Origin: Tubulanus polymorphus
Taxonomy: Eukaryota; Animalia; Nemertea
Assembly: GCF_964204645.1 (NCBI RefSeq)
Contig: NC_134030.1
Coordinates: 1,657,355 to 1,721,354 of the forward strand
DNA: 64,000 nucleotides
Reading direction: 5' to 3'
Position numbers and translations under genes: made by a program. Below, one piece after another: positions 5,167 to 34,740 of this stretch; the stretch's first letter is position 1, and every line of letters starts with the position of its first letter. The notes beneath the pieces are model-generated. The model saw nothing but the letters and a program-made list of their open reading frames with translations, was not told the origin of the DNA and searched no databases.

Positions 5167-5232
5167 TTTTTGATACGGGCTAGACGTTGAGGGGCCCGCG
5201 CCCCGGGTTTTCTTTAAAGCTTTTGGCATTAT
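5167..5232 (-). pseudogene. Orphaned copy of MPK start exon (MPKALKKTRGAGPSTSSPYQK), donor site lost
   Basis: TTTTCTAG acceptor, ATG at 5229; homologous to 15121-15186; abuts the duplication breakpoint instead of GTAAGT. Confidence 0.8.
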
Positions 5233-5301
5233 CTAGAAAAACAAGTAAAAATCTTAAATCATTTGAAAATATATCAGTCAGTCTTATTCTGGTTCAGTGA
5301 A

Positions 5302-7318: not shown

Positions 7319-8233
7319 GGTTTCCCACCATCTTTCAAAAGAGAACTATCGATATATCATTAGCTACAAGGAAACTTTTCAGAAACTTTTTCAGGTCATT
7401 CTTTCTTGTATTATTAGCATTTGATTCTCTATATATCGTCAGAACATGGACTCAGAGTGTTTCTTTAATGGTTAAGAATGTCTCTTTAACCAACATCCCC
7501 CTAGCCTGCTTCCTACATATCCCTTCCCTTTCCTCCTGATTACCTTTGATCCCCACTGCCTAGCAGCTAACAGCTGCTGCTATTTTATCTGGTTTACATG
7601 TTTTGCAGATAGTGTCTGTTATGCTATAGTTGTTCTTTTAATCGTTTAACTTCTTCATCTGAAATTTCATTATTCTAATTTCAGTTTCACGCAGGAAATG
7701 GTTCATGAAAATCTGCATTGAGACTGGGACGAAATGTGCATTGAGACGGATGAAATCTGCATGAACAGAGATATACTTTAAGATCCCCATTTTATCCATC
7801 GGAGTGAATGTACATCCACTACTCACAGGTAGCAAACCTACAAACGCTTAACACTCATCCCTGGGCCCTGATTCAAAAATAAAAAAAAAAGATTAAATTA
7901 AGAATTAACATTTTTATGAATCAGTGATCAGTTTCATAAAATAATTCCTAAATTAATTTTAGGGGTTTATTATTTCAGATTGAAATGAATTCTTCATGTT
8001 TATGCAATTCTCATTATCTTTCATTGCAGCATTTATATATTCAATTTTAATCATACATGTGAAATATATAATGTATTTTCAGGGAAACGTAAACAAGAAA
8101 GGAAGGGAAGAAAGAGAAGGGAAGAAAGAGAAGGGAAGAAAGAGTTGGATGATTAATGCGCACTTATTCTCCATTCCGAATTCCTGTATTCGACTCTAGG
8201 TGATCATCATACGAACGAGATATAGAAAAAAAA

Positions 8234-11134: not shown

Positions 11135-11302
11135 ACTTTCTTCCGGTCCACTTACTTCCGCGTTTGTGATTTGCATACAAGTAGTTTGAATGTTAAATGT
11201 ATTAAGCCGCGTGTTGATTGGTTGAGGTCAGTGCGGTTTACTGAACGATGACAAGCTGTCAGCTGATCGAATCATTCGTTTCACAGACATTACGAAGTAA
11301 GT
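11135..11302 (+). promoter_or_regulatory. Candidate promoter and 5' UTR exon of the MPK gene
   Basis: CpG-richer patch with two CTTCCG (ETS-like) motifs, octamer ATTTGCAT and reverse CCAAT (GATTGG), followed by strong donor GAA|GTAAGT at 11297. Confidence 0.4.
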
Positions 11303-11919
11303 ATATTTTACATCTATGATCAAAAATTGTAGTGTAAAAAAACTCAAAACTAAGGCCTCTATAAATGATCGATTGACTTTAAATGATTACTTTAGCACAG
11401 CTCTTGTAGACAATGATTAGGTGTCATAGTAGTTTAGCTCGAAAGTGCACATATAAGGTTAATTTTCATCCCTTATTTAGAGACCGAGGTATTGAGCGTC
11501 CATTTCAGCCCTTAAAACATCATCAACCTACCTCAAACTGACTGTTTTTAAATCCAGCAATAGTTACCTAACTATTGACTCATCATGGATTCGATTCAAA
11601 AACAATTTTTGATGATCATAGTGATTCGAAACGTTTGAATTTTTGAAAAACACGAATGCTAAATGACGGATCCGGACTTCGATTGCGGCCCAATGGCAGA
11701 GTTGATTTTCTTATTTGGAATTTGAAGATATAAATCACTGAAATCAATTGGTTTTCTCAACCAAAATTAAAATTAAGAAGAATTTAGGATGGAGATGTTT
11801 GATTTTCATTTTGTCTAAAATGCCGACTTAAAAATTAATTCAATTGAATCAAATTAATGAATTCATCATTTCACGATATTATAGATAATCAAAATGTGAA
11901 TATGAAATCACCTTTTCAA

Positions 11920-14140
11920 TCGCTGTTTTTGGGTAAGATCGCAGTTTTTAGGTAAGATCGCAGTTTTTAGGTTAGATCGCTGTTTTGAGGTTAGATCACC
12001 GTTTTTGGTTAGATTGCTGTTTCGTGTTAGATCACTTTTTGTGTTAGATCACAGTTTTTTTGTTAGGTCGCTGTTTTTGGGTTAGATCGCTGTTTTGTGT
12101 TAGATCGCTGTTTTAGGTTAGATCGCAGTTTTTAGGTTACATTGCAGTATTTTGGTTAGACCGCAGTTTTTTGTTAGATCGCAGTTTTTAAGTTAGATCG
12201 CTGTTTTGGGTTAGATCACAGTTTTTGTGTTAGATCGCTGTTTTAGGTTAGATCGCAGTTTTTAAGTTAGATCGCAGTTTTTGTGTTAGATCGCTGTTTT
12301 AGGTTAGATCGCAGTTTTTAAGTTAGATCGCTGTTTTGGGTTAGATCACAGTTTTTGTGTTAGATCGCTGTTTTTAGGTTAGATCGCAGTTTTTAGGTTA
12401 CATTGCAGTATTTAGGTTAGACCGCAGTTTTTTGTTAGATCGCAGTTTTTAAGTTAGATCGCTGTTTTGGGTTAGATCACAGTTTTTGTGTTAGATCGCT
12501 GTTTTAGGTTAGATCGCAGTTTATAAGTTAGATCGCAGTTTTTGTGTTAGATCGCTGTTTTAGGTTAGATCGCAGTTTTTAAGTTAGATCGCTGTTTTGG
12601 GTTAGATCACAGTTTTTGTGTTAGATCGCTGTTTTTAGGTTAGATCGCAGTTTTTAGGTTACATTGCAGTATTTGGGTTAGACCGCAGTTTTTTTGTTAG
12701 ATCGCAGTTTTTAAGTTAGATTGCTGTTTTGGGTTAGATCACAGCTTTTGTGTTAGATCACAGTTTTTGGGTTAGACCACAGTTTTTTTGTTAGATCGCA
12801 GTTTTTAAGTTAGATCGCTGTTTTGGGTTAGATCACAGTTTTTGTGTTAGATCGCTGTTTTTAGGTTAGATCGCAGTTTTTAGGTTACATTGCAGTATTT
12901 AGGTTAGACCGCAGTTTTTTTGTTAGATCGCAGTTTTTAAGTTAGATCGCTGTTTTGGGTTAGATCACAGTTTTTGTGTTAGATCGCTGTTTTGGGTTAG
13001 ATCACAGTTTTTGTGTTAGATAGCTTTTTTAGGTTAGATTGCTGTTTTTGGGTTAGATCGCTGTTTTAGGTTAGATCACAGTTTTTGGGTTAGATCGCTG
13101 TTTTGGGTTAGATCACAGTTTTTGTGTTAGATCGCTGTTTTTGTGTTAGATCGCTGTTTTGGGTTAGATCACAGTTTTTGGGTTAGATCGCTGTTTTTGG
13201 GTTAGATCGCTGTTTTGGGTTAGATCACAGTTTTTGGGTTAGATCGCTGTTTTTGGGTTAGATCGCTGTTTTGGGTTAGATCACAGTTTTTGGGTTAGAT
13301 CGCTGTTTTTGGGTTAAATTGCTGTTTTTGTGTTGGATCATTGTTTTTTGTGTTAGATCATTGTTTTTGGGTTAGATCGATGTTTTTGTGTTAGATCGCA
13401 TTTTTGTGTTAGATCACTGGTTTTTTGTTAGATTGCAGTTTTTAGGTTAGATCGCTGTTTTTGAGTTAGATCGCTGTTTTGTGTTAGATCGCCGTTTTGT
13501 GTTAGATCACTGTTTTGTGTTAGATCGCCGTTTTTAGGTTAGATTGCTGTTTTTAGGTTAGATCGCTGTTTTTAGGTTAGATCGCTGTTTTTAGGTTATA
13601 TCGCAGTTTTTGTGTTAGATCACTGTTATTGTGTTAGATAGCAGTTTTTAGGTTAGATCGCTGTTTTTGAGTTAAATCGCCTTTTTGGGTTAGATCACAG
13701 TTTATGTGTTAGATCACAGCTTTTAGGTTAGATTGCTGTTTTAAGGTTAGATCCCTTTTTTTTCTTAGATCGCAGTATTTAGGTTAGATCGCTTTTTTTG
13801 GATTAGATCGCTGTTTTTGGGTTAGATCGCAGTTATTGTGTTAGATCGCAGTTTTTTGTTAGATCGCTGTTTTTGGGTTAGACCGCAGTGTTTAGGTTAG
13901 ATTGCAGTTTTTGGGTTAGAACACTGTTTTTCTGTTAGATCGCAGTTTTTTGTTAGATCGCTGTTTTAGGTTGGATCGCTGTTTTAGGTTAGATCGCAGT
14001 TTTTTGTTAGGTCGCTGTTTTTGGGTTAGAAAGCTGTTTTTGTGTTAGATTGGTGTTTTTAGGTTAGATCGCTATTTTTGTGTAAGATCGCTGTTTTTGG
14101 GTTAGATCGCTGTTTTTGGGTTAGATCGCTGTCTTTGTGT
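11920..14140. repeat. ~19-20-bp satellite (GTTAGATCGCWGTTTTTRG), roughly 110 monomers, with ~261-bp higher-order period
   Basis: Variant monomer TTACATTGCAGTAT at 12137, 12398, 12659, 12885. Confidence 0.95.
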
Positions 14141-14189
14141 TTTTGTCAATCATCATATCAAGATTTGCAATCCCAGTTGCCTTCAAGTT

Positions 14190-15051
14190 TCATATAGAGA
14201 ATTAGTGGATGTGGTGTCCCTGGACCCCTACATGCATCATATAGAGAATTAGTGGATGTGGTGTCCCTGGACCCCTACATGCACCATATAGAGAATTAGT
14301 GGATGTGGTGTCCCTGGACCCCTACATGCACCATATAGAGAATTAGTGGATCTATTGTTCCTGGACCCCTACATGCACCATATAGAGAATTAGTGGATGT
14401 GGTGTCCCTGGACCCCTACATGCACCATATAGAGAATTAGTGGATCTGGTGTTCCTGGACCCCTACATGCACCATATAGAGAATTAGTGGATGTGGTGTC
14501 CCTGGACCCCTACATGCACCATATAGAGAATTAGTGGATGTGGTGTCCCTGGACCCCTACATGCACCATATAGAGAATTAGTGGATGTGGTGTCCCTGGA
14601 CCCTTACATGCACCATATAGAGAATTAGTGGATGTGGTGTCCCTGGACCCCTACATGCATCATATAGAGAATTAGTGGATGTGGTGTCCCTGGACCCTTA
14701 CATGCACCATATAGAGAATTAGTGGATGTGGTGTCCCTGGACCCCTACATGCATCATATAGAGAATTAGTGGATGTGGTGTCCCTGGACCCCTACATGCA
14801 CCATATAGAGAATTAGTGGATGTGGTGTCCCTGGACCCCTACATGCATCATATAGAGAATTAGTGGATGTGGTGTCCCTGGACCCTTACATGCACCATAT
14901 AGAGAATTAGTGGATGTGGTGTCCCTGGACCCCTACATGCATCATATAGAGAATTAGTGGATGTGGTGTCCCTGGACCCCTACATGCACCATATAGAGAA
15001 TTAGTGGATGTGGTGTCCCTGGACCCCTACATGCACCATATAAAGAATTAG
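14190..15051. repeat. 47-bp minisatellite array 2 (reverse orientation, ~18 copies)
   Basis: Reverse complement of the 5302-6192 unit. Confidence 0.97.
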
Positions 15052-15123
15052 TTCACTGAACCAGAATAAGACTGACTGATATATTTTCAAATGATTTAAT
15101 ATTTTTACTTGTTTTTCTAGATA

Positions 15124-18100
15124 ATGCCGAAGGCAAATAAAAAAACTCGGGGCGTGGGGCCCTCAACATCTAGCCCCTATAATAAAGTAAGTACAAATTT
15201 ACTGCTTCCATGCTTATTTATTCATCCCATACTTAGTATTTTGTACCCCTGGGTCCAGTTTCACAAAGAGGATTAACGCCTAAATCGATTTAAGATAAAC
15301 TGTATTAATGAAGGAATTAAATCGATTTAAGAGTTAAACCTGTTTGTGAAACTGGGCCCTGAATTGCATCTAGAATGAAAAAAAAGAAAAAAAAATATTG
15401 AAAATAACGTTGGTGAAATATTTCTCGATCTCTCTGGATTTCTGCTCAATGCATCGTTTAGTAAAATATCGATATTCTCTAAAAGTAAAGATATAAGTAT
15501 AAAAATATTGTATTGAATCGTGATTAGTTACTGTATGCGCTGCTAGTTGTTGCCCAACCCATAGCCTCATTTCTCTCCATTCTAAATTTGCATTGTTTAA
15601 CATTGTCTGGTCGCTATGGAAACTATTTATTTAAGTTTCTTTGTGGTATCCATGGCAACAGTAACGTTTAGGTAGTGGCACCAATTATGGGTCCCAACGT
15701 TCCCATGGCGATACATGAGAAAATTTATCCTATTTTTGACCTACATGACGTAAGATGGTAGTGAGTCGATGACGTCATTTTTGTCTCACCACTAATGAAA
15801 AAAAAAATTAAATGAAAAAAAAAGGAAGAAATCGTTAGAATTACGTTTATGAAATTTTTCTGGATCGGCTAAATGTATTGTTCCATTAAATATCGACATT
15901 CTCTAAAATTATAGGCATCAATATCAAAATGATGATACAGCAGACTCCGCTTAACTCTGTTCTATTTGGACCATTAATTAACCGAATACCAACTTTTTAA
16001 AATTTTAGGATTTTTACGTTAAGGATCAGAAAATGTGTATGCAATTTCAACCGGGTACCGAGTAGGGTGGCCGAGTCTACTGTAGTCTGCTGCCCCCTCG
16101 AATCCATTACCTTATTATCTCTCAATTTGCATTGTTTGACCTCGTCTGGTTGCTATGGAAACTATTTAGTTATATCAGGAACGGTTTTTTCGATGTAACC
16201 AGTGGCAACATTTAACAGGCGTGTCCGTCCTAGAGATAAACTGTCTGATTTCACAGCCACATCCGTCCTGGAGATAAACTGTTAGATAAACTCTGATTTC
16301 GCGTCCGTCCTATTTCTTGTCATTGTATGAATATGTTTTCTCTTTTATAGGGTACAGCGCAGCAACAACAACAACAACAACAACAACAGCAACAGCAACA
16401 ACAACAACAAAAATTTAATATTTCTATGTCGGGAATAGACGTAAGTTATCGTAAACGCCTGTTTGAAGTCATCATTCTTGAGCTTGAAACCGAAATTTAT
16501 ATTATAGAATATTAAACCCTGCTTCTGCTACTGACAGGTAATGTCCGTCATACATTACTGCATCGTCAAATCTATACCAGGGTGCACCCAGGCAGATCGT
16601 TCGCATCATCACATGCAAAGGGCTGATTATTTTGGAACCCAGTTTTTATCAGCTGGAACATTCTGCACATTCGACCATATTGATTGATAGCCCGTTATAG
16701 ACGAGTGGAGAAAAACTGAAAAACCAGTTCGGAAAAACTTCGATTGATTTCACTCACATTTACAGAAATTTGGTCCGACCCCAAAACCATTTACTTACAC
16801 TATACAAATCAGATCAGGTTTTTAACATTGTCTTTGATTGTATTTTCAGTTTTTGCCGACAACGCCGCCCAGTGGTGTTTCGACGCCGGTAAGTGATAAC
16901 TATTTTCTAATAAATCACGCTTATTTCAATTTGTAATTTGAAAATAGAGGGTAGTAGCTGTTATGTATAAATTATGCTAATTAGGAATAAATTCATATTC
17001 GATTAAGTCTCATTATCGTAGAAGTCATATATTAATGATGCTATCTCTAAAGTTGTCATTTAAATTAAGTGTTATATTTACTACTTCATTTGCTTCATGA
17101 CCCAAAAACCTCTACTATATAACTACTGGTTTTGTTCTAATCTTGGAGAATTTGCTGCAAAATTTACTTATCATTTGTTAAACAGTTTTTATTGAAAACC
17201 TGAATCAGTGATACATGCATTCATGAATATCCATCTAATATTTTGTTTTATTTTATCTTTACAGGATTTATCACCGATACAGCACGTGGACGTAAGAGAT
17301 TAAACATTGATCTTGAATTTTAAGTTCAAACTAATTTATTTTTTATCTCACTCGGGACTATAGTTATTGCGTTCACTTTGCGTCCAGTTGTCTCGGGTAG
17401 TTTTTGATTTATCGTGTTGATAATTGGGTATATACTCAAACTCAAAATATCGGCGCAATTGGAATTAAGATGGCGCACTTGTATGTCCATTTTTTTCCCC
17501 GGCAAAATTAGCACTTTAGCAGATTTTAAGGATCAATTCTGTTGTTATATTACATTGAAATCAGAGTTTAATATATATCGGTATAGAGCAGATTTTTGCT
17601 CTAGTTATAAATAAAGTTATAAATAATCTCATGACATGTTCTGTATATGTGTAGTGAGTTTCAATGTCTTTGGTTCCTTTTAAACCAGGGGGAGTTAAAT
17701 TTGAAAATGTCAGATCGTCGAGCATTTCAGACCGCTTCCAAAGTGGGTCCCTGCACCCCTAGTTATACCGTTAATATTTTAATAATATATTGATATACCA
17801 TACATTGATATCGGTCTTGTAATTGGATCAACAACCATGAGATCAAAACACAGCAAATATGAACCTGCTGTGAATCAATAGATTTGTGATAAATGTAATG
17901 AAATTGTTATTTTTCATATTGACTTTTTGAGTTAAGGGTCTGTTGTATAAGAGTATTTGGTCTCGCGTGTCAATGTATGATATCAATCTGTTGTATTTCC
18001 TCGTTCCAATGTTTAAAAGGTGTTCGTCACCTTATATTAATAAACTACTTTAACCGTTAGATGGCGCCATAAGTGTGATATTTGATTTATGGGATACCCG

Positions 18101-21100
18101 CAAAACCAGCTATTCCACCAGATGGCGCAACGAGTAGTAGGTCGTTCGTTGTCAAAATTAGTTCATTTTCGATGAACTTTGAACTGGTTTGAAGAAGAAA
18201 TACTTTCATTCTTCTACTCTGATATCGATTTAGTTTTCATTAATAATTGATTCATTTAAGAGAACAATTCATTCAGATTTAATTGAAATGTACAAGAAAA
18301 TCGAACGCAGACGACCAACTATTTACTAGCGACACCTGGGGAATCCTCGCCTGCCATAAGTGGAATCCTCGATTGCCACAGTAAGACTGCGGGTATCCCA
18401 TTGTTTGGCGTGTGAAGTAAAGTAAAGTTAGAAAACGGATGTTTAACTTTGTTGTGAAACGAAAGCGTTTTGGAGATTTTTAAACCAATCAAATCAATAT
18501 TTTGATATTACGCTTGAAACCCTTCCCACTCATATTCTACTTACTAAGTATATATTCTTGTTTCCGTGGAAATCATGGTGAGTGGCGCCATCTATACAGT
18601 GGAGTTAGCTTTAAAAATCGAGCATGCTTCGACAAGTGGCTCCATCTATTCCCTAATACTGAAGCGAGGTAACCAGCATGCAGCGCCCTTATATACAGGA
18701 AATGAACGCCTATCAAGTTTAACAATGCACGGTGTATTGACCACAGCGACCGGTGATAATTATATCAATGTTGATTAGCTATTGCCATAGACAGGTCCGT
18801 AGCGTTTGACTGGACCAGAACGGGGCCCCCTAACCAAAACAAATTTTGAAAACGTGCCCAGATAAATTGCCTCTGGGAGATTGATTTAACGAGGTTTTGA
18901 TTAAATGAACAAATTTTAATATTTGTAAGTTTAACATTTCTGTTTTTAATTTTTCTTTGTAAGGAACTGAATTTTCGAACCCCCCTTAACCACTTCAAGC
19001 TACGTTCCTGATATAGTGCTAGCTATACCTGAATACTTTTCTCTTATTGAAATTGTCTAAAAAACCAGCACCTTGAACTAATGAACGTCATAATGAAAAT
19101 GTTTAAAAATTCAACCGTTAATGAATTTGACTAATATATTTTTTTTATTTTCATTTCTAGCGTCAGTTTGCCTCACAGGCAAGGTCGCCGTCGCTTAATG
19201 TAAGTATCAGTGACGCCCTCAATCTCACATGCCTCACTTCCCTCCTAATGTAACCATTTTTATGAAATTCCTCAAGAAAATATATACTAGTAATCTTAGA
19301 ATACACGTTTTTGTACCCAGACCCCTTCATTCTACTGAACTACCGTGTAATAAGTGCCTGTTGTGTTCATTTTCTGTTGCATTGATTTATATATTATTTC
19401 TATTTACAGTTGTCAAACAACAGCAGCAGCAGCAGCAGCAGCGCACCCCTCCCGCCGGAGACGCCTCCCGACTTGCAAGCAAGAAGTAAGTTCAGTCTTC
19501 AAATACAATTTCAATGCATTCAATTTTGTGTATGGCGTTAAAACGGTTAAAGTTGTGACTAGTTTTCATAACTCCGTGACGTCATATTTCCATCGAGTAC
19601 CGGACCCTTTCCTATGTTTTTTGCCAATTTGGATTGAATGATCGCCAGCGGTTTTTCTATACGACCCGGCTCTGCTGTATTGCATTTAGCCATCCTTTTT
19701 CTTGGCGTTTTTTATAAGAAGGTGTTTGATTTTGTCTCTAAGGGATTTAGGAATTTAAGAGACACTTGTACTCTCTATACAGTGAGTTTGTTCTGTTTTT
19801 GTTCCCTCGTGAATTTTATTTTGTTTGAATCAAATCAAATCAGTGCATCTTTCTTGAATTGCGTGTATGTTATAATATTATGTAAGTTATAACGTTAAAA
19901 TTTCTGTTATATTTAAACCGAATATTTAATTGTTGTATTTTGAATGCGATAATGCCGCTCCCTGCTAAAGTCCAGCGTCGTCATCGTGAGGGATGCGGTC
20001 ATCTGTTCGGGCCCTGATTACGTTCTGTGTTCATCCTGTTGGGCTACATCGGGCGTTATATGAGTTCATCCTTCCTGGACTTGCGGATTGTGGTCGGAAG
20101 ATCTATGGGTTCGGGCCGATAAGTCCCGGAAACAGAAAGTACAGTTTCTGCCGATGTGCCCATTGATGTCTCTATTTCAGAACATCACAGCGGTCGCCGG
20201 CTGTACAAGCACGGTCGGCTTCCCAACTCCATTCTCTGAGGAGGATCGCTGGTTCTCTAGTAACGGTCAGTCACCAGTCAATCAACGGTTCAGCTGGTTC
20301 AGTTTCCCAGGTATCGGCGCGCGACAGTCGGGATACCTGCACAGGAACTCAGGTCCGGTCCGGGCTACTCCGAGCACCGGTCCGGTCCAGGCATCACCGG
20401 ATACTGAACATCCTGTCCGGTAGCTTCGAGAACTGGTCCGGTCCAGGCATCACAGGGTACTGAACATCTGGTCTGGTCAGCTTCGAGAACCGGTCCAGGC
20501 ATCACCGGATACTGAACATCTGGTCCGGTCAGCTTCGAGAACTGGTCCGGTCCAGGCATCACCGGGTAATAAACATCCGGTCCGGTCCGGGTGGCTTCGA
20601 GCACCGGTCCGGTCCAGGCATCACCGGGTACTGAACATCCAGTCTGGTCCGGTCCAGGCATCACCGGGTACTGAACATCCAGTCTGGTCCGGTCCAGGCA
20701 TCACCGGGTACTGAACATCCAGTCCGGTCCGGTCCAGGCATCACCGGATACTGAACATCCGGTCCGGTAGCTTCGACAACTGGTCCGGTCCAGGCATCAC
20801 CGGGTACTGAACATCCAGTCTGGTCCGGTCCAGGCATCAGTGGATACTGAACATCCTGTCCGGTCAGCTCCGTGCACCGGTCCGGTCCAGGCATCACTGG
20901 GTACTGAACATCCACTCTGGTCCGGTCCAGGCATCACCGGGTACTGAACAGGGTTCGTCGCGGTGCTTGAAAAACTTGAAATGGCTTGAATTTGAAAAAT
21001 ACTACTCAAGCGCTTGAAAACAGCTTGAAAATAGATCGAAAGCTTGAAATAATTATTTTTGACTTGAAATAAAAAGATATGGCTTGAAATGCTTGATTAT

Positions 21101-24100
21101 CACAAATTTTCTTCTTCGCAAATTTTTTTCGATGAAATCGCTGACAGAATATGTTCTTGAGTTGTTTCTACGCTTGCGTCATGTTTTAGGCATCAATAAA
21201 GAAATTAATTGAATTGTATATAATCGCTATGAGGCTCTTGTGGTGAAACTCTACGGTGTCTGGAGACATGAACATACGGGGAAATTTCAGTCATGCATGT
21301 TATCGAGCATTGATGTAAAATGGCATTGAAATCCCACACCAGGAGTGAGAGCCATGTTGAAGGCACCGCGACCTAGTCAAAGTCATTGAACATTACAAAT
21401 TTCGTATTAGGCCATCCAAAAATCAAGGTCTGTTTGCCGTCATCCGACCGACCCGACTTCAAAGGTACCCAGTGGAAACTTTTTTCTTGGATTCATTGAA
21501 ATAAATTGTATTTTTGATACAAATGGCCGACCCACTGCCGATGTATGAGCTATGTATGTTTGAAGTTAAGTGTGCATCATGTGAAAACATGCCTCGACTA
21601 TTTACTTGAAGTTTTCCAGGAAACTGGCAGTGTTCCAATAAGCTGCCATTCATTCTAAAGCTGGTAATGTTATAGCGTGCATATATTCAATCTACTGTTT
21701 CATTTTGAACGCAGATTTCGGATGTTGTTTCCGCTAAAAGTGGTGATGATAAATTTGTTGTTTTTTTTGCCCCAAAATTTTGCAAAAAAAAAATGATGCT
21801 ACCTTCCTACTGACTTATCCCAAAAATAGTAGGTGTAACGGCAAAACAGACAATTAATTTGGGATGGCCAAATATCCAAATCTTGATTGATATGAATATT
21901 TAAGCTAGGAAATGCTGAAAATCATTGTGATGAACAGGTTTCATCTCTAACAGAATCGTATCAACTCGGAGGTTCCACTGGAATCAAAATTTTACCTCTT
22001 TTTTAACATTTTTATACGAACCTGTTCAAAATAGGCAAATTGGCTGCGACTAACGAAAATTGCTTCCAACGTGCCATAAAAAATAGCTTGAAAATGGTAT
22101 AAATCTAGCTTGAAATGGCTTGAATTTCACCTGAGCTTGAGACAATGAACCCTGCTGAACATCCGGTCCGGTCAGCTTCCAGCACCGGTCCGGTCCAGGC
22201 ATCACCGGTTACTGAACATCCGGTCCGGGCAGCTTTGAGCACCGGTCCGGTCCAGGCATCACCGGTTACTGGTCCGGTCCGGGCAGCTTTGAGCACCGGT
22301 CCGGTCCAGGCATCACTGAGTACTGAACATCCAGTCCGGTCCGGTCAGCTCCGAGCACCGGTCCAGGCATCACCAGGTACTGAACATCTGGTCTGGTCCG
22401 GGCGGCCTGGCATCAATGTTTCGAATTTAAAACATAGTTATCATGGCTCTAGGTTTGGTAGAGGGCGCTCTTCTACCAGATGCAGGAGCGAGGTCACCTT
22501 CACGGAGATCGAGATCGAGGGATTATGATTGATTCTGTAGGAACCATCATCATTCATCAGTTCAGGTCGAGGGACCGTTTAGGAAGTTCACATCTTTCAC
22601 GTCGAGGGACCGTTTAGGAAGTTCACGTCTTTGACGTCGAGGGACCGTTTAGGAAGTTCACGTCTTTCACGTCGAGGGACCATTTAGGAAGTTCACGTCT
22701 TTCACGTCGAGGTACCGTTAAGGAAGTCGTCACAATAATCAGGATTTCCGCGATTTCGAAAGTCAGATTTTAAACTTGTTATTGTCATTGTAAGCTACCG
22801 CAGTTACAGGTAAGCCTATTCTTGATTGCCCGAGACAGGCGTGCAGATATTGTTCCCGACTTAAGTTTTTGGTTGATTTTCTTGTGACTTGTTTGTTTTA
22901 GGGGTGAGATGGATGAGCCTTATTGTTTTTTGACATATATAGGTCATCCAAGATGGCCGCCACAGCCATTACAATGTGTAAAATAGCCATGCTTGTGACA
23001 ACTCTACAATCTACAGTTTCAAACCAATTTGCCAATTACTTATTCTGTGGTTTCATAATGGTAGGAGAATGAGCCTTATTGTTTTTGACATATATAGGTC
23101 ATCCAAGATGGCCGCCACAGCCATTTCAATGTGTGAAATAGCCATTTTGAAGCTTGTGACAACTCTACAATCTACAGTTTCAAACCAATTTGCCAATTAC
23201 TTATTCTGTGGTTTCATAATGGTAAGAGGATGAGCCTTATTGTTTTTGACATATATAGGTCATCCAAGATGGCCGCCACAGCCATTACAATGTGTGAAAT
23301 AGCCATTTTGAAGCTTGTGACAACTCTACAATCTACAGTTTCAGACCAATTTACCAATTACTTATTCTGTGGTTTCATAATGGTAAGAGGATGAGCCTTA
23401 TTGTTTTTGACATATATAGGTCATCCAAGATGGCCGCCACAGCCATTTCAATGTGTGAAATAGCCATTTTGAAGCTTGTTACCGCTCTACGGACTTAAGT
23501 TTTAAGCTTAAGACTTAAGATGGCCACCACAGTTATATCAATGTGTTAAATCTTATCCGATTTGGAGCTTGTTACTGCTCTAAGATGTAGAGGTTTAGAG
23601 GTTTATAATTTCATTCATACTTGTACTGTGGTTTATTTATGGTGGTCAGAGGATGAGACCTATTACAATTTGCATTCTCTACTTGACTCACTGGTCAAGG
23701 GTTAATATCTAGTTTGATAAATGTGGAGCATGTCGGTGAATCATCCCCCCCCTCCCCCGGACTCTGATCTCAATGTCTGATGTCAATCGTCAGCAGTTTC
23801 AATGGAATGGGCTCGATTAGGTGTGGAACAAGTGGAATCCTCGATTGCCACAGTCGAACCTAGAGTATTAAGAGCTCAATTAGGTTCTTCTTTGCGTCTC
23901 TTCTCCGGTTGGAGTGCTCCAGTTTCCACCGAATGGAGGAAGATTCGAGATGTGCAGATTCAAGTCCACCATGCGGACTCCGGCTCCGGCTCCGGCTCCG
24001 GCAGCTCAAGGTTCAGCCCGAACTCACACAATGCCATCTCAAGCATCCGTACTTTCTCAAGCGGCTACTAATGCTGTTTGGAGAACAAGTGCACAGCTCC

Positions 24101-27100
24101 AACATTCTCGTGCCCCTTCTGGTCAGAATAATTCTAGTTCATATCGGGGAATGCTCCTAAAAGGAGCTCTTCCTCTCGGAGAAACTCAAAATGAATGCTC
24201 GGGGCCAGTGAGAGGTTGTCTATAACGAGCAGCCACCTACTGATCCGGCGTTCCCGGGTCGTATCACGGCGGCTACTGTCTTCAATTCTGAACACCTCCC
24301 GACATGCGCCCGAAAGCAGGTCACGAGACACTAATCTCGTCAGCTCTCAAAGATCTGGCCAAAAAGAGAGCAATAGAACCAGTACGCGACGAAGCCACAT
24401 CCGGCTGGTTTTCATGAATATTTATGCTCCTGAAGACCACAGGGCGTCGATGGACTGTCATTCCTCGAGCGGCACCTGGATATCCCGAGGCTTCCGATGA
24501 CTAAAACAGGGAGGTAATTCAAGGTCTCCGCCGAGGTTAATGGGCGGCTTCATTGGACCTGAAAGATGTCAGGTTCCTATTCACCCGAAATCTCATCAAT
24601 TTCACAGAATGAAGTGGAAACGCCGCCAGTTCCAGTTCAGGTCTCTTCCAGTCGGCCTCAGTACAGCCCACGCCCTGGGTATTTACCAGCTTGGGTCAAG
24701 TCCAGAAGGTACACTACACTCCAGGGCTGGGTTTCATAGATATGGAAGAAAAATAATTCCAGGGAACATTTTGAAATTTGTCAGTTATAACCATGGTTTC
24801 TCATTGTTAGTATGGTGGTTGAGGATTTATCCCTTTGGATAACTTTGATACTCAGTCTATGAAACCGGGTCCTGGAGTAATTGTCTGTTGGTTTACCTCG
24901 ACGACTGGTTACTAGTACCAAACTCGACTATAGAATGTCAGGAGGCGGTGACCGCTGTCGACCGCTGTCGTAGACTTAGTTCACCAGTTCCGCGTAAACT
25001 AAGTAAAATCTCACTTGATGCCGTCCCAACAGTTCACATCTCCGGATCAGCACGGTCTTTCCGTCCATGGCTCGAGTAGCCAAACTTCAAGAAGCGTAGT
25101 TACCACAAACGAGAGGACAGCTAGTTATCGGTGACGCCTTTGGCTAAATGCAATACCGCACTGCCAGGGATCGTATCTCTGGCTATCTACACATTCAGAG
25201 AATATTAACTAAAACCATAGGAAAGGGTCAAGCACTACTCCGAAAAAAAACTAATTTTATTTCCAAAAAATTATGATATTATATGGATTGCATGCTGTGT
25301 GGAAGAAGTTTTCAAAATTATTTAGGAGCTTATTATAATTTGAATACATGAATTGAGAGCAATTTGAAATGTGTTGATATCCGAAAGTTTTTTTATGACT
25401 TCACTCATTCACCTGATGAAGCTTCTATACATTAGTACCCAAAGCTTGTGTGTCAAATAAACTAGTTACACGTCCTATAAAGTACTACTTGTCTCGTTAT
25501 ATATTCTAAACCCCAGTTAACAATTCCAGTAAGTCAGGTTTAGGGAATAGATATTTAAACCTTGAGATGATACCGATGTGATACAATTCCAGTAAGTCAG
25601 GTTTAGGGAATAGATATTTAAACCTTGAGATGAAACCGATGTGATACAATTCCAGTAAGTCAGGTTTAGGGAATAGATATTTAAACCTTGAGATGATACC
25701 GATGTGATACAATTCCAGTAAGTCAGGTTTAGGGAATAGATATTTAAACCTTGAGATGAAACCGATGTGATACAATTCCAGTAAGTCAGGTTTAGGGAAT
25801 AGATATTTAAACCTTGAGATGAAATCGATGTGATACAATTCCAGTAAGTCAGGTTTAGGGAATAGATATTTAAACCTTGAGATGATACCGATGTGATACA
25901 ATTCCAGTAAGTCAAGTTTAGGGAATAGATATTTAAACCTTCAGATGAAACCGATGTGATACAATTCCAGTAAGTCAGGTTTAGGGAATAGATATTTAAA
26001 CCTTGAGATGAAACCGATGTGATACAATCCCAGTAAGTCAGGTTTAGGGAATAGATATTTAAACCTTGAGATGAAACCGATGTGATACAATTCCAGTAAG
26101 TCAGGTTTAGGGAATAGATATTTAAACCTTGAGATGATACCGATGTTATACAATTCCAGTAAGTCAGGTTTAGGGAATAGATATTTAAACCTTGAGATGA
26201 AACTGATGTGATACAATTCCAGTAAGTCAGGTTTAGGGAATAGATATTTAAACCTTCAGATGAAACCGATGTGATACAATTCCAGTAAGTCAGGTTTAGG
26301 GAATAGATATTTAAACCTTGAGATGAAACCGATGTGATACAATTCCAGTAAGTCAGGTTTAGGGAATAGATATTTAAACCTTCAGATGAAACCGATGTGA
26401 TACAATTCCAGTAAGTCAAGTTTAGGGAATAGATATTTAAACCTTGAGATGAAACCGATGTGATACAATTCCAGTAAGTCAGGTTTAGGGAATAGATATT
26501 TAAACCTTGAGATGAAACCGATGTGATACAATTCCAGTAAGTCAGGTTTAGGGAATAGATATTTAAACCTTGAGATGATACCGATGTTAAAAAATTCCAG
26601 TAAGTCAGGTTTAGGGAATAGATATTTAAACCTTGAGATGAAACCGATGTTATACAATTCCAGTAAGTCAGGTTTAGGGAATAGATATTTAAACCTTGAG
26701 ATGAAACCGATGTAATACAATTCCAGTAAGTCAGGTTTAGGGAATAGATATTTAAACCTTCAGATGAAACCGATGTGATACAATTCCAGTAAGTCAGGTT
26801 TAGGGAATAGATATTTAAACCTTCAGATGATACCGATGAATTTAGCAATTTTGAATGAATTAAACCAATATGAGATTTCGATCCTAAGAATATTGGAAGC
26901 TTGTGTTTAACGTTACTAAATATTAATATTATATAAAGCTAGAAGGACACGAGGGTATCCATTTTTTGCCCGATCGCGACGATTAAATTCGCCGGTGAAT
27001 TTATACGCCCGATACGAGCGGGTACCGATCTATCTATAAATCGGCCGTCACGGTGATTTTCGTCGCCCGCCGACATTAAACATGTTCGATATTTACGCCG

Positions 27101-30100
27101 GTGTTCGGGTCACTTGTTAATTCGCTCGTCTTGTCGGCAAGCTTAAAAAGATTTAGAAAAAACTAGAAATTCTCATTCCTGAATGAACTGGATTCATCTG
27201 GGTTCAGTTTCATGAGACACAGTTCAAACTGCTCTTGAATTTGAGTTTGTAATTAATGTATGTGATTATAATGAATTGTATTTTTGTTTTACAGCTTTGG
27301 CATTTCGGTTAAGACGTGCGTTCCGGCGGGAGGAGTTCGTCAGAATATTTCTACCGGAGTGTAAGTAGTTTAACTATTTTCATACAATATCATTTAGTGT
27401 GACGTGTGTTACTGATTCAGGCACGGATCCAGGAATTTTTCCAAGACGGGGTTCATAAAAATGCTGACTAAAATCTCTAATAATAGCCGGGGCCTATACG
27501 GCATATTTTTTGGCCAAACATAAGGCCTTTTTTTAATAGCATGGTTTGGTTGCTCCCAAAATTTGAAGAAACATAAAATAAAAAAGAATTAGAAAAAAAA
27601 TTTTTTATTCCTGTCTGTGAAACAAATTCAGTGAAAAACCGAGCAAAAAAGATTTTTCACCTCGGCCGAATGAGAATCCTGGATTGAACGATGAAACAAT
27701 TGAAAAACGCGAGGTTCTTTTTTGATCGCAGTGTGCAGAATTCAAACTTTCCAAGAATCATTTGTTCGGACATATGTATATTGCCCTATTGACAGTTCCC
27801 TCTTCCTTCTAAAAGTGATTTTATCTCACTGAGGGAATTTTTAAAAAATTTTCTCTGAAATGATATGGTAGCGTTTTTTTTTTGCTTTAAAAATTTTTTG
27901 GTAGCCGATCAGCGGGGTCACGACCCCTGAAACCCTCCCTGGATCCGCGCCTATGATATCTCCTCAAAATCTAATAAAAACTTTCAATGAATTAATGCTG
28001 TAATGACGATATGTAGCCATCTGTCTATTTGAATGCATTTGCAAAAAGACAAAAAGAAATAGTAGCAGAATTTTGGCTAAAAGTTTAGAATACCCAAATT
28101 CAACATTGCTTGCAGCAGACGGAATTTCCGCCATTTTGGTTAACAGGGGATTCCCCCCTCCGGTACTTCCCATGATCAATAGTGTCTATGACGCGTTGCG
28201 TACGGAATGCCATGGAATTCCCTCACATGATTTATGATAATAATGTTTACTTGCATTCTGATTGGTTAAAATCGCGTGTAGTTTGAACGTAGGCAATGTT
28301 TACATTTGTAACGTCACCGGCGAGTCGCTGACATTAACGTAGTCATTGAGTTAACATTATCTTGCACTGAATGGTGATATCAATCGCATTCATTTTATAA
28401 ATATTTTGAATATGAATTTGTTTTTATATATCAACTGCGAGTAACAGTGTTACGCTATTGAGTCTTAAGAGACAGCCTTTATGGACCTTATTGGTTGTTA
28501 TAACTCACAAGCTGACTGAGTTAGCATTCTGGATCCGTCAGATTAGTTACTTCTAGAAAATATGTTAGTCACATTTTCTGACTATATTCTGGAAAACAGT
28601 GGAAGCTTGTATCCACCCTAGATTAGAACCAATCAGAATAGAACCAATCAGAATACACTATTTTACAGAAAATGTATTTATGACAATTGCGTAAGGTTTT
28701 AGTAAAATAGTGTTTTTTCTCGAGTAGTTGCCGAAGAAGCATAAAAATTTGATTCAATTTCATTCAGATTTAAACAAACAAATCGAATTTCATTTCATTC
28801 AGCGCAAACTTCAAATCTAATTCAAATTTTGTTCAGTATGAATAAGTTGCGAATCATTGAGAGGAAAAAATAATTAATTGTGTTACTTAAAAAAATCACA
28901 ATTGTACTGTGTTTATCAAAACAGGAGACCACAGGACCTTTGGTCCTCTAGTATTCTTTTCCTAGTTATTCCAAAAACACTAAAACAGTCCAATCAATGA
29001 TCGCTGCCAGACCAACACGATTACATTGAAATCAAACTTAAGTAACATCAGGCGCCCCCTGTTGGAATAATATTCATAGCCGTAGCATCGAAACCATTCG
29101 ACTTGTTGTTTAATGTATTTCTCTCTATTTTTATTTTACAGTGATGAACATTTTAGAAGAATGTCCGTTTGGGGACTTGGTGGGGGAATTCAAAAGAAAC
29201 TTGGTTCCCGATAGGATACCACCACCGGTTAATCCTATGTCGCCCGCTGTTGCCCCTCCCCCACGTCCATTAAATTCGCCTCAGCAGCGGCCTGTCAGAC
29301 AGCCGCCCCCGGCCGCCACTCGTTCGTCAGACAGAGTCCGGGGACGGCTGTTTGAAGGAGATCTGACGGAGGTAAGAATCTTTATTTGTTTTCATATTTT
29401 ATTCAGGATATCAGTTGAAGTTCAGCAAATAAATTACCAGACCTGTAAACAGAAGAGTAGTCATAAATTTCCATTTGCGGGTAAAACCCCATAGTCGAAA
29501 ACCTTCGGTTATTGATCTATATCTGCTTAAGACCAATGGTTGTACACACGAGTGCGAAAACTTATCGCTCAAACTTTGATTGTATCCATGGTAACGCGTA
29601 CAGTATACTATGCGTGACTTACCGTTTCCTATCACTGGAATACAATACTGTTTTAGACCATGAGCGCCATCTGCGGCGGTCATAACGGACTGAGTGGTGA
29701 TTGGCTGAAATGCTCGTCTTCCGTGGTGACGATTATTCGGTGTTACACGTGCAGCAGACACGTCTCTGAATATCTAACATTTGATTGTTGTAACTCATCG
29801 GGAAAAATATGTTTATGAGTCGATTTTTTGTCGAAATTTTGTTCGGCAGAAAATTGGCTGCGTACGTCAAGAAGGCGGCTGATATTTGTATCGTGTGACC
29901 CCTCGTCCCGGTAATATGCCGACCCACGTACACCTGAGACCAGTTGCATAGTCAGAGCTTAGAATTAAGACCGTTCTAAGACCAACTTAGTTCTATAGCC
30001 AATCTAATAACTTAAGACCAGTCTTTAGATTTAAGACCACTTTTGGACTTAAGTCTTGACCATGGAATCGGCCCCAGATGCTTATTCCGCTGTATTGGAT

Positions 30101-30898
30101 GCTGACGTGCTCGTGTCTTCCAGCAATGTTGTTATTCACCAAAAATATCATGTTTTGTTTGAATAACACGATTCATCTGAGTCTGGGTTTAACGGATGAC
30201 ACGTTCACACAGAACTACGAAATCAATATCAGAAGTCCTTTTATATTGAAACGGTCCCAGAAGTCCCTGTTATAATGGGTACTTTTTCAAAAAAAGTAAC
30301 GAGAACTCCGATGGCTTTCCGTATCGGTAAAAACTAACTATTTCTATGAGCGTCACTCGTAGATTTACTGAAACGCCACCTTGTGACACGATATCCTAAC
30401 TACGTATAGGTGTTTTATTTGCTGAATCGCTGGTTTCTCATTCTCATTTTTTATACTTGTGTTTAATTTTATACTAAACAAATTTTTCACTTTTTCTCTT
30501 TACAGACACGACCACCGCCAAAAAAAACTAGAACAAAAAGGAAAAGAAAAGTTGCGGTCGTCGTGGCTCCGCAGGGAGGAGGAGCAAGAGTGGTCCCGGC
30601 GGATGGTGCGGCTGACGAAGGTAATCGGGAGGAAGGGGAGGGGATAAATAGGAAGCGGCCGAGGAGGGATGGTGGTGGGGCTGGGGATGGTGCGGGTCCT
30701 GCTCCTCCTGCTCCTCCATCCGTATCTCGGGCGGTCACTCGTTCACTCGCCAAAAAGCTGGCGAGTGAACGAGTGGCCCGAGAGGTAGAGGTGGTGGCCC
30801 GACATACGGATGGAATGTGGGAGGAGCGGCTTCGTTCGGGGACAATTCCGGATTTGTTAACTGATTTAAAAAATATTCTTTCAGTGAAGGGATATTAG
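15124..30898 (+). CDS. Spliced 9-exon gene for a 340-aa uncharacterised, probably disordered nuclear protein: join(15124..15186,16351..16440,16850..16888,17265..17291,19161..19199,19410..19485,27295..27360,29142..29371,30506..30898)
   Basis: Every exon has a polypyrimidine-AG acceptor and every internal donor is GTAAG; junction phases 0,0,0,0,0,1,1,0 match; 1023 nt with no internal stop: MPKANKKTRGVGPSTSSPYNK|GTAQ17KFNISMSGID|FLPTTPPSGVSTP|DLSPIQHVD|RQFASQARSPSLN|LSNNS7APLPPETPPDLQAR|TLAFRLRRAFRREEFVRIFLPE|LMNILEECPFGDLVGEFKRNLVPDRIPPP...EGDLTE|TRPPPKKTRTKRKRK...KNILSVKGY*. Confidence 0.82.
15249..15361. mobile_element. Small palindromic MITE (CTG-flanked)
   Basis: TIRs GGTCCAGTTTCACAAA / TTTGTGAAACTGGGCC; relatives at 24722-24874 and 29934-30077. 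Confidence 0.7.
15938..16082. mobile_element. TA-flanked MITE (Tc1/mariner-like ends)
   Basis: TA-CAGCAGACTC ... GAGTCTACTG-TA. Confidence 0.5.
18089..18402. mobile_element. MITE with 14-bp TIR
   Basis: ATGGGATACCCGCA ... TGCGGGTATCCCAT. Confidence 0.6.
20949..22154. mobile_element. Non-autonomous DNA transposon with CAGGGTTC TIRs and 5-bp TSD (hAT-like ends)
   Basis: CTGAA|CAGGGTTC...GAACCCTG|CTGAA; subterminal CTTGAA repeats at both ends. Confidence 0.85.
21410..21869. mobile_element. Nested MITE with GGCC termini (Zator-like)
   Basis: GGCCATCCAAAA..GTCTGTTTGCCGT / ACGGCAAAACAGAC..TTTGGGATGGCC. Confidence 0.6.
22566..22727. repeat. 35-bp tandem repeat, ~4.6 copies
   Basis: GTCGAGGGACCGTTTAGGAAGTTCACGTCTTTCAC at 22566, 22601, 22636, 22671, 22706. 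Confidence 0.9.
22910..23490. repeat. ~161-bp satellite, ~3.6 copies, possibly the core of a non-autonomous Helentron-type element
   Basis: GAGCCTTATTG at 22915, 23071, 23232, 23393; contains CCAAGATGGCCGCC; downstream hairpin CTTGAC-TCACTG-GTCAAG near 23682. Confidence 0.8.
24330..25000 (+). pseudogene. DIRS1-type reverse transcriptase remnant
   Basis: WAASLDLKD, VPIHPKSHQF..MKWKRRQFQFRSLPVGLSTA and LLVYLDDWLLV found in shifting frames; interrupted by a MITE at 24722-24874. Confidence 0.85.
25520..26838. repeat. 63-bp minisatellite, ~21 copies
   Basis: Unit ACAATTCCAGTAAGTCAGGTTTAGGGAATAGATATTTAAACCTTGAGATGAAACCGATGTGAT. Confidence 0.97.
27419..27952. mobile_element. MITE with ~15-bp TIR
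   Basis: AGGCACGGATCCAGG ... CCTGGATCCGCGCCT. Confidence 0.65.
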
Positions 30899-30951
30899 GT
30901 GCCTTGAACGCATGAGTCGTTCATGCGCGCCTAATATGCCTTCACTGAAAA
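30878..30951 (+). other. ~74-nt stem-loop enclosing the MPK stop codon
   Basis: TTTTCAGTGAAGG/CCTTCACTGAAAA, ATATTAGG/CCTAATAT, CGCATGA/TCATGCG. Confidence 0.7.
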
Positions 30952-31499
30952 AAAATCAACTATAACATGTACCACATATTTTTTGATTTAATATTAGTCC
31001 AATTCCACAATTATTTCGGCTTTCAATAGTGTCTTCAATTCTTTAAAGCCCAAAGCACCTTTTTGACTCAACATCCAGTATGAAGGTGGCCGGGAATCGG
31101 GCCTGTTTTCTTCCATTTTTGTATCCCGCCCAGCATACTGGTTGTTGACTCGAAAAGGTGCTCGCTCTGGGAGCTTATCAAAGGCAGGTGATGGGAAAGG
31201 TGCCATCACACACTCTCCTTTGATAAGTTTCCTAGAGTGTCACGGGCTTTAACGGGTTGAATTCACTATAATACCAATTTTCCAAAATCAATTTAATTTC
31301 TTTCAGGCCATTCTTTTTCCATGTTTTTCTGGTACATGTTATGGTTGATTTCCATTTTCGAAAATCCGGAATTGAAGCCGTTCGAAGTCGGGGGGATGGT
31401 GGTGGGGTTGGGTTAGTTTAGGGTTCCTCTCTGATTACCTTCTTTAGCTCATCATCCGTGCAGGTGGCGCTTGCTCTTCTAGCCGGTGTTCCCTGGGGT

Positions 31500-32125
31500 A
31501 AACATTTTAAATTTAAAAAATCAAAAATAAAAAAAAATTATAAAATCTTTAAAAATCTCATCTCATTTCATCCAATTTATTTATTTGCGGGTGCGATGCC
31601 TATCGCACCCATTCATGTCATCCATCAAATAAAAATTAAAACTAAAAACGAAAAAAAATATAAAAATTTAAAAAATCTCATCTCATTTCATCCAATTTAT
31701 TTGCGGGTGCGATTCCTATCGCACCCATTCATGTCATTCATCCAAAAAAAATAAAAAACTAAAAACGAAAAAAAAATATAAAAATTAAAAAAATCTCATC
31801 TCATTTCATCCAATTTATTTATTTGCGGGTGCGATTCCTATCGCACCCATTCATGTCATTCATCCAAAAAAAAATAAAAAACTAAAAACGAAAAAAAAAT
31901 ATTAAAATTAAAAAATCTCATCTCATTTCATCCAATTTATTTATTTGCGGGTGCGATCCCTATCGCACCCATTCATGTCATTCATCAAAAAAAAATTAAA
32001 ACTAAAAACGAAAAAAAATATAAAAATTTAAAAAATCTCATCTCATTTCATCCAATTTATTTATTTGCGGGTGCGATTCCTATCGCACCCATTCATGTCA
32101 TTCATCCAAAAAAAATTTAAAAACT
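31500..32125. repeat. ~120-bp tandem repeat (5 copies), each with a 9-bp GC hairpin between A-rich tracts
   Basis: GGGTGCGAT-N4-ATCGCACCC in each unit. Confidence 0.9.
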
Positions 32126-34347: not shown

Positions 34348-34740
34348 TTAATATATCCTCCGTACAGGAGGACCATGAAAAGGTTTGAAGGGATCCCTAG
34401 TTAGCGCTTGTCCAGGTTTGGCTCTGGACCCGCTTGTTCGACTAGGCATCTTGTTGGAAATTTTGTCGACTGAAACTTCCGTAACTTTCGTTTTAGACCT
34501 CGCTGCTCGAAGAGCCGTTGCTGCGTCGGTTACTGTCATGCTTCGGCACAATTTTGAACGATTGTTGGAAACCGCCTTGTTCTTCTGCTGCAGATGTTGA
34601 CTGTGTCGTACCCACAGTAAAGTAGCCATCTTAAATTCAAATAGTTTCGGACATTTGAGGTCCTCATCAACTCCGAGTCTTCATTCAACTGCAGTTACTG
34701 CCATTTGCCAGTGTCTGATGTAGAAGTTCTGACTTGACAT
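34348..34740 (-). pseudogene. 130-codon basic ORF with one in-frame TGA
   Basis: MSSQNFYIRHWQMAVTAVE*RLGVDEDLKCPKLFEFK continues in frame into track ORF MATLLWVR...; same TGA in the copy at 1-203. Confidence 0.3.

Follow-up and report, generated by a model that had tools for sequence, protein, structure and literature searches.

Does the row of short open segments that lies between satellites and transposon relics in this part of the Tubulanus polymorphus genome form a gene, and what would its protein and its RNA do? In the window, the 64,000 nucleotides of contig NC_134030.1 analysed here, a sequence-only reading had proposed nine exons joining into a 1023-nt frame, and both the recomputed segments and a blind splice-site scan bore this out. 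The coding segments, all on the forward strand, measure 63, 90, 39, 27, 39, 76, 66, 230, and 393 nt in order and give 340 amino acids with a single stop at the terminus. The donor is GTAAG in all eight introns, and every acceptor is a T-rich tract followed by AG. Scanning blindly for acceptors and donors returned the same exons with almost no extras on the plus strand, whereas on the minus strand every candidate was closed in all three frames. The agreement of all eight junction phases had been called unlikely by chance; the phases do agree, but this is modest evidence on its own because the small exons have two to three open frames each (product of the open-frame fractions ~0.005–0.03, varying with the exons counted). 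The strong evidence for the gene model is comparative, as judged from the paralogues described below.

The segment with the start codon had been taken as the first exon. It is preceded by a non-coding exon at 11228–11296 (+, 5′ end approximate), predicted from the DNA, which is matched in the C8 paralogue and occurs about once on the same strand upstream of each gene copy. A CCAAT-type box (11217–11221) lies before this exon and a GTAAGT donor at 11297 closes it; a short upstream ATG is found at 11248, and a TGA at 11264 stops the frame of coding exon 1, so that the ATG at 15124 is taken as the start. Coding exon 1 (15121–15186, phase 0) encodes a basic N-terminus beginning with MPKA. It is followed by four internal exons of 27–90 nt in symmetric phase 0-0, namely exon 2 (16351–16440, poly-Q), exon 3 (16850–16888, 39 nt here and 39, 45, 48, or 51 nt among paralogues), exon 4 (17265–17291, 27 nt), and exon 5 (19161–19199, 39 nt). 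Exon 6 (19410–19485, phase 0-1) encodes poly-S and proline, and exon 7 (27295–27360, phase 1-1) the first half of a hydrophobic core; the latter is 66 nt long in all paralogues seen, including those of the sister subfamily B. Exon 8 (29142–29371, phase 1-0) contributes the core helix, a Pro-rich linker, and the motif R-x-S-x-R-x-x-G-R-x-x-x-G-D/E-x-x-E, which is common to subfamilies A, B, and C. The last exon (exon 9, 30506–31545, 3′ end predicted) encodes NLS-like stretches and a C-terminal domain of ~60 aa up to the stop at 30896–30898, and continues as 3′ UTR with its first AATAAA at 31526. The gene had been described as built of microexons; short exons exist, but only exons 3–5 are 39 nt or shorter, and two long exons hold 623 of the 1023 coding nucleotides.

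Near-identical (A-type) copies of this gene number ~30–34 and subfamily B has nine, so that the family totals ~40 copies, spread over five chromosomes and all within 3 Mb of a chromosome end. Exon order and phases are kept in a diverged paralogue, in which lengths differ by multiples of three, and the ~10 non-repeat length changes among paralogues are likewise all multiples of three. Differences in exon 7 are mostly synonymous, and dN/dS, to which the sequence-only reading had pointed, is 0.23 for the diverged paralogue over exons 7–9 (bootstrap 0.15–0.33), with purifying selection on the core and the C-terminal domain. Synonymous and nonsynonymous counts from sets of 20 copies were set aside as biased, since the copies had been chosen by protein score. 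Exon structure and copy number are read directly from the DNA, as are the precise intron-less copies described below. Comparison of these sequences identifies the locus as a genuine lineage-specific protein-coding gene under selection, with at least 10 predicted exons.

Homology between copies runs on for at least 10 kb on each side, and the gene is common to many duplicons that are >90% identical, in tandem and between chromosomes. As read from the copies, it is the core of a ~33–45-kb segmental duplicon amplified near chromosome ends. The primate core duplicons (NPIP, GOLGA8, TBC1D3, LRRC37; PMC7419210, PMC6436712) are alike in that near-identical duplicons, repeated in tandem and between chromosomes, share a core gene, which in the primates is transcribed, and are accompanied by inversions and partial copies. 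The present family differs in belonging to an invertebrate, in that its parent gene was not found, and in its purifying selection; an amino-acid excess is reported for NPIP. The family may represent an invertebrate counterpart of the core-duplicon genes.

Subfamily B has 18 consecutive phase 0-0 exons versus four in the A-type gene, and tandem exon–intron duplication is seen directly in it. As such duplication explains symmetric exons equally well, the proposal of combinatorial splicing is unsupported; the phase-0 mini-exons would rather form a length-variable linker growing by exon–intron duplication. A generator of diversity like the schistosome MEGs, in which skipping of symmetric mini-exons gives many protein variants, would account for these runs of 4 (A) to 18 (B) exons, and MEGs share with this family the short symmetric exons between long introns, the multiple copies, and the restriction to one lineage (10.1101/2023.06.21.545858). 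MEGs, however, consist mostly of 10–20 very short exons, mostly of 15 nt, and have a signal peptide (10.1101/2023.06.21.545858), while here the exons measure 27–90 nt, half of the coding sequence lies in two long exons, and exons of ≤70 nt hold only 196 of 1023 coding nucleotides; the A-type gene falls short of the MEG exon pattern, to which B with its 18 comes nearer. In addition, every donor is strong, the mini-exons encode a low-complexity linker, and the composition of the N-terminus indicates no signal peptide, which makes a MEG-like generator quite improbable.

Copies of subfamily B, 97–100% identical, are scattered over three chromosomes and occur in either orientation. The exon with which their coding sequence begins is similar to one half of a KH domain in the vigilin-like gene of this genome, which suggests exon capture. 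Both observations would suit a gene carried as cargo, or as an accessory, by a large mobile element, for example a giant element that is Helitron-like and non-autonomous or of another type. Such an origin is nevertheless very improbable, as neither the 64-kb window nor 38 kb around a B copy contains a transposase or Rep ORF, and no element ends were found where the homology extends on either side. A link to Helitrons in particular was rejected, since 0 of 58 Helitron Rep hits fell inside the gene clusters and Helitron termini were not found.

Precisely intron-less genomic copies exist for junctions 1, 2, and 5. One copy is joined precisely at junctions 1 and 2 around exon 2, and in another, at 63535–63649, exon 5 is fused precisely to exon 6. 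The microhomology at these junctions is 0–1 nt, and in sequence the intron-less copies resemble the present copy more closely than they do the C8 paralogue, which has its introns. We infer germ-line expression, because partly spliced RNA would have been reverse-transcribed back into heritable DNA. In this one young family, exon–intron duplication, the RNA-mediated loss of introns at exact junctions, and possibly the capture of an exon (the vigilin KH half-domain in B) are at work.

An inverted, scrambled library at 59545–64000 (−), which continues beyond the window edge, contains exon 1 many times over, exons 5 and 6, in part fused exactly to each other, and the 3′ end of exon 9. Inverted, broken fragments of exons 9 and 1 were also found by sequence match at 5149–7546 (−); among them, positions 6986–7318, formerly regarded as a paralogue, are an inverted, broken exon-9 fragment with stops and not a gene. 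Inverted exon-rich fragments adjoin both A and B copies. Together with the recent massive amplification, the retro-copied pieces, and the orphan basic protein, they could point to a germ-line selfish gene, a driver or poison, along with its suppressors; the amplified gene would be the driver, while the inverted scrambled copies and the hairpins would make silencing RNAs. There is a precedent in the Dox family of Drosophila simulans with its Nmy/Tmy hairpin RNAs (PMC10317233), which is likewise young and amplified, encodes basic proteins, and has chimeric relatives in inverted orientation from which dsRNA can arise. We consider a selfish gene improbable, however, as selection is purifying and not positive, the family occupies five chromosomes and shows nothing to suggest sex linkage, and unstable duplicons also produce inverted fragments mechanically. 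Unlike the Dox family, this one shows no HMG or protamine domain, and its hairpins lie inside the gene itself. The sequence-only reading had overlooked the amplification, the upstream non-coding exon, the libraries of inverted fragments, and the cluster of conserved hairpins treated below.

The protein is probably mostly disordered, basic, and nuclear. Residues 1–111 are basic and polar (hydrophobic fraction 0.22), and the basic NLS-like stretches and the absence of a signal peptide make a nuclear location plausible. For its role, chromatin association is the likeliest guess; function would reside in three parts, the helical core encoded by exons 7 and 8, the R-x-S-x-R..GR motif, and the domain at the C-terminus. 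Many S/T-P sites had been noted, and eight were counted, but none is a full S/T-P-x-K/R CDK site, so that phospho-regulation is unsupported. Protein searches and folds were run exon by exon, and the 45-aa core, which is split by intron 7, was therefore entered as separate exons and not whole; the joined sequence was used solely for frame, dN/dS, and alignment checks. No copy with exons 7 and 8 fused occurs among the genomic matches. With these queries nothing exceeded the Pfam cut-off, and homologue searches, the ESM Atlas, PDB sequences, and viral and metagenome contigs gave no match, the word-index searches reaching only proteins of 0.55–1.75 times the exon length. Protein database, structure, and contig searches thus yielded no homologue outside the T. 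polymorphus genome, in keeping with the earlier view of a lineage-specific protein of no recognisable family. The sole match of the C-terminal profile among 1.84 billion representatives, a fibronectin-III-like repeat protein, was rejected, its score being the sum of 13 short stretches. The exon-wise AlphaFold models are of low confidence (pTM 0.35 and 0.17), and the best fold matches, NLRP helical domains and MLLE (Z up to 7.2), were discarded as background level for helical bundles. An RLRSG stretch, which we take to resemble the LANA/IL-33 nucleosome motif, was dropped as it is absent in subfamily B.

The last exon is predicted to fold into four microRNA-sized hairpins on the plus strand. 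HP1 (30716–30794, ~34 pairs, z −10.3) is overprinted on the coding sequence, and its stability is not explained by the protein, because z is −6.9 against synonymous recodings. HP2 (30879–30950, ~31 pairs, z −9.7), which recurs in the library at 59545–64000, has a 5′ arm that includes the stop codon, while HP3 (31054–31162, long, z −5.4) and HP4 (31158–31243, ~34 pairs, z −5.1) lie in the 3′ UTR. The loops of HP1 (6 nt, 4 nt in B) and HP2 are small, and this 530-nt stretch holds three of the five most stable 80-nt windows of the 64 kb. In subfamily B the region is 44% identical and the hairpin positions are the same. HP1 is there in register with three double changes, a result equalled by 342 of 100,000 synonymous recodings, and its structure is thus kept under sequence change; the stop codon again falls within the 5′ arm of a hairpin, which is long and unrelated in sequence to HP2. 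Within subfamily A double changes are few, with one in HP1 and one in HP3, the latter from A-U to G-C in the C8 copies, and HP4 has one variable position among diverged C8 copies. HP3 and HP4 are retained as a block, and decayed subfamily-C copies are without HP1 and HP2. A dispersed MITE was rejected as the source, given the family-specific occurrence. Comparison of the subfamilies shows selection on these predicted RNA hairpins. Two hairpins have kept their positions although the RNA has changed in sequence and over half of the encoded residues have been replaced, a clear-cut example from nature of an RNA structure and a protein evolving together on shared bases. To our knowledge, exonic hairpins overlapping coding sequence are rare and come mostly from single-copy vertebrate genes.

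Microprocessor substrates are unbranched stems of ~35 bp with single-stranded flanks. The stems of HP1, HP2, and HP4 (34, 31, and 34 pairs) have the size of pri-miRNA stems, and HP3 is longer. The reading we prefer, with a probability of about 0.5, is an amplified gene for a mostly disordered, probably nuclear protein, whose mRNA would also be a Microprocessor-type substrate. The four stems of ~31–35 pairs would be recognised by Drosha/Pasha and the mRNA either translated or cropped, with cropping limiting the protein output from the 30+ copies and/or releasing small RNAs; a single transcript may thus yield protein and small RNAs. DGCR8 mRNA hairpins are cut by Drosha (PMC5928563), and pre-miRNAs are known within coding sequences and spanning the CDS/3′ UTR boundary (PMC12465437). 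DGCR8/Pasha mRNA and the exonic microRNA hosts are alike in being coding mRNAs in which hairpins of pre-miRNA size are conserved within the CDS, across its boundary with the 3′ UTR, and in the 3′ UTR itself. They differ from the present ~40-copy gene in that here one exon has four hairpins and is followed by a downstream array, position is kept while sequence has turned over, sequence homology is lacking, and the system is known from DNA alone.

That array, a 260-bp tandem repeat with three hairpins per unit, lies downstream of A-type copies (36709–37657, +; 3494–4445 for the previous copy). Its double changes do not exceed those of shuffles, and it shows only a G-U excess (23 vs. 10 pair types, p 0.018, pairs not independent). 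The hairpins could instead be sites for dsRNA-binding proteins of the Staufen/ADAR type, controlling the localisation, editing, or stability of the mRNA or the termination of its translation. The nearly perfect pairing of the stems, their small loops, the position of the stop codon within one arm of a stem in A and B alike, and the lack of any match between a hairpin and an Rfam family, miRNA families included, at gathering score would agree with this. Four to ~15 separate stems of 70–110 nt in series rather resemble a polycistron, however, and some lie past the first poly(A) signal, so that we hold such protein sites to be rather unlikely. An extension of the Microprocessor reading, a long shot, would be a self-limiting dual-output germ-line cassette, in which an orphan chromatin protein is encoded by an mRNA that is a microRNA-type polycistron, one of its hairpins being embedded in the coding sequence and another spanning the stop codon; the gene would have been amplified to ~40 copies along with inverted, partly retro-copied fragments that silence it, as a conflict system unrelated to described drivers.

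Reads aligned to 15060–19700 contained no spliced joint; runs X1 and X2 behave as DNA, X6 was empty, and none is recorded as RNA. Run X4, also not recorded as RNA, contains 53% of the last-exon words and little of the 5′ region. Regarding the transposons reported in the introns, the degenerate relic of a reverse transcriptase, whose motifs are of DIRS type, is present at ~24550–24930 in intron 6 (19486–27294, +), but at motif level only, with no Pfam match. The satellites described inside introns were found again: 35-, 52/57-, 63-, and 161-bp repeats accompany the relic in intron 6, and 19-bp (GGGTTAG-containing) and 47-bp repeats occupy 11919–15052 within the first intron.

The nine coding segments proposed by the sequence-only reading on contig C6 (C6:1,657,355-1,721,354, within a 268-Mb animal assembly) have the positions and lengths claimed for them. 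Their donors are GTAAG, their acceptors T-rich AG, and the joined product is 340 aa with a single stop. A blind scan for splice signals recovered these nine exons and hardly any further candidates. Agreement of phase across the junctions, which had been considered unlikely by chance, is present, but taken alone it is moderate evidence only, because two or three reading frames stay open in the small exons. We regard it as virtually certain that the gene is real. Exon 1, the first coding exon (ATG at 15124), carries its own acceptor, and each gene copy is preceded on the same strand by a conserved block (about 11228-11296 here) that includes a CCAAT-type box and a GTAAGT donor. This block is apparently a non-coding exon, as it contains an in-frame TGA and differs by 2 nt in length in C8. 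The first intron contains a 19-bp satellite (11919-14141) with the telomere-like GGGTTAG and a strong strand skew. A 267-bp satellite (800-2170 and 35314-35890) has units with an acceptor-like and a donor-like site, their three frames closed when judged by eye; the repeated unit could serve some downstream transcript as a non-coding exon.

On C8 (16.313-16.327 Mb), a diverged copy shares exon order and phases with the window gene; its exons measure 69, 45, 51, 30, 45, an extra 45, 61, 66, and 233 nt, followed by the last exon, and encode 343 aa free of stops. Exons 1-6 were intact in four further copies checked, where length differences were again multiples of three. The dN/dS among paralogues, a check suggested earlier, was 0.23 over exons 7-9 (bootstrap 0.15-0.33), with 0.10-0.12 in the core (the predicted helical part of exons 7 and 8) and 0.06-0.12 in the C-terminal domain. 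The gene is under selection. Silent-site divergence from C8 exceeded a dS of 1 in exon 7 and the start of exon 8 and was 0.06-0.13 in the C-terminal part of exon 9; a core so much more diverged points to patchy gene conversion and hairpin constraint.

Searches with single exons as queries found no homologue outside the source genome, in line with the earlier view that the protein belongs to no recognised family. Amino-acid composition suggests disorder at residues 1-111 and 156-280, the hydrophobic parts being 112-155 and 281-340; structure models gave low-confidence helices. The S/T-P sites described before exist (8), but none is a full CDK site. A nuclear, chromatin-binding protein is suggested by its basic stretches, by the R-x-S-x-R-L-like motifs that several paralogues carry, and by the absence of a signal peptide.

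The gene belongs to subfamily A, of which 34 full-length, stop-free last exons were counted in the assembly (on C3, C6, and C8; some copy-number error is possible). Copies mostly form tandem units of about 33-45 kb, the window's self-match running from position 1 to 34537. The spacer between copies contains a basic 93-aa ORF (34348-34629, minus strand) without a Pfam match. Sister subfamily B comprises 9 copies on C8, C9, and C11, 44-48% identical to A within aligned domains. The B gene has 18 consecutive phase-0 exons, several of them clear duplicates of one exon-intron unit, and then exons of 52, 66, and 236 nt whose phases match A exons 6-8. A generator of isoforms like the schistosome micro-exon genes (MEGs) is improbable, as the window gene lacks two MEG features (10.1101/2023.06.21.545858). 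The first coding exon of B (L045:4587-4706, minus strand) resembles the second half of a KH domain in the genome's vigilin-like gene on C7 (L047:1388-1588, minus strand; 41% over 32 aa, 0/5000 shuffles, genome-wide E 0.06), a hint of exon capture; the exon is absent from A. The third set, C, is frameshifted and forms an array on C12 (L096/L097, 3.29-3.35 Mb) of about 10 relics that retain MPKA exons and the exon-8 motif; an intact C gene was not located. Across A, B, and C, the element kept best is the motif that closes exon 8.

No intact A or B copy lies farther than 3 Mb from a contig end, and inverted and scrambled exon fragments flank A and B copies. No transposase or Helitron Rep linked to the gene copies was found, and it is unlikely that the gene travels as mobile-element cargo. 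The window does contain a young Penelope-like retroelement (50603-55005) with an intact 699-aa RT and GIY-YIG ORF (52491-54590). The element's terminal copies, both direct and inverted, are 100% identical, and its end also occurs as a short fold-back within a B-copy intron (L041:3627-3853). Upstream of the inverted fragments, a 41-nt segment with strong splice signals (7827-7867 and L042:7192-7232, both minus strand) may belong, as an exon, to a divergent transcript that crosses the fragment library. A 600-nt inverted repeat (39657-40251 and 42287-42878) shows 83% identity.

The last exon (exon 9) contains four predicted RNA hairpins, overlooked in the sequence-only reading: HP1 (30716-30794, inside the coding sequence, z -10.3), HP2 (30879-30950, stop codon within its 5' arm, z -9.7), HP3 (31054-31162, z -5.4), and HP4 (31158-31243, z -5.1), all upstream of the first AATAAA (31526). 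Of the five most stable 80-nt windows in the 64 kb, three fall in this region. Against synonymous recodings HP1 reached a z of -6.9 and is therefore not a by-product of the protein sequence. Among the 28 intact copies compared, 22 had an unchanged HP1 (20 of the copies having been chosen for protein identity), and in two C8 copies a pair-breaking amino-acid change is accompanied by a pair-restoring synonymous one. B has hairpins at the HP1 and HP2 positions, differing in sequence from those of A; when the protein alignment sets the register, the HP1 stems of A and B have 9 consecutive pairs in common, among them three double changes, and 342 of 100,000 synonymously recoded B sequences did as well. 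HP2-HP4 are confined to this gene family. Diverged C8 copies retain HP3 and HP4 together as one block, 2-6 kb beyond the stop, HP4 with one variable base. HP1 and HP2 are missing from the broken C copies. HP1 and HP2 are probably selected RNA structures. That the hairpins serve as binding sites for dsRNA-binding proteins is possible, if unlikely.

Exons 1+2+3, 1+2, and 5+6 were found fused in genomic copies exactly at the predicted junctions. As the missing introns show 0-1 nt of microhomology and are kept in the more distant C8 copy, their loss would most simply be explained by reverse-transcribed, partly spliced RNA, implying germ-line transcription. No run recorded as RNA contained gene sequence, and four sequencing runs, two of them behaving as DNA, gave no spliced joints over exons 1-6. 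In X4, a 2014 run with 19 Mb of contigs, 53% of the last-exon words occurred and, for the 5' region, little beyond repeats. A transcriptome biased towards 3' ends would be consistent with this pattern, which is not proof of one.

Most likely, with a probability of about 0.5, this is an orphan gene for a nuclear protein that was amplified through segmental duplication in subterminal regions and is expressed in germ-line cells. Its mRNA would double as a Microprocessor-type substrate; cropping would cap the protein dose and/or free small RNAs. The alternatives partly overlap with this reading. The proposed mode would resemble that of DGCR8 mRNA (PMC5928563) and exonic microRNA hosts (PMC12465437).

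Six kb downstream, a 260-bp 'satellite' (36709-37657) is a tandem array with three hairpins per unit, located on the same strand behind copies on C3, C6, and C8. G-U pair types outnumber A-C pair types (23 vs 10), but double changes are not in excess, and the case is therefore weaker than for HP1-HP4. Rfam had no match for this array or for HP1-HP4. A driver with its suppressor, by analogy with Drosophila Dox and the hairpin RNA of Nmy (PMC10317233), would be a rather unlikely explanation. One copy of the array, on C10 (L092, 8.4735-8.4745 Mb), has no gene-exon match nearby.
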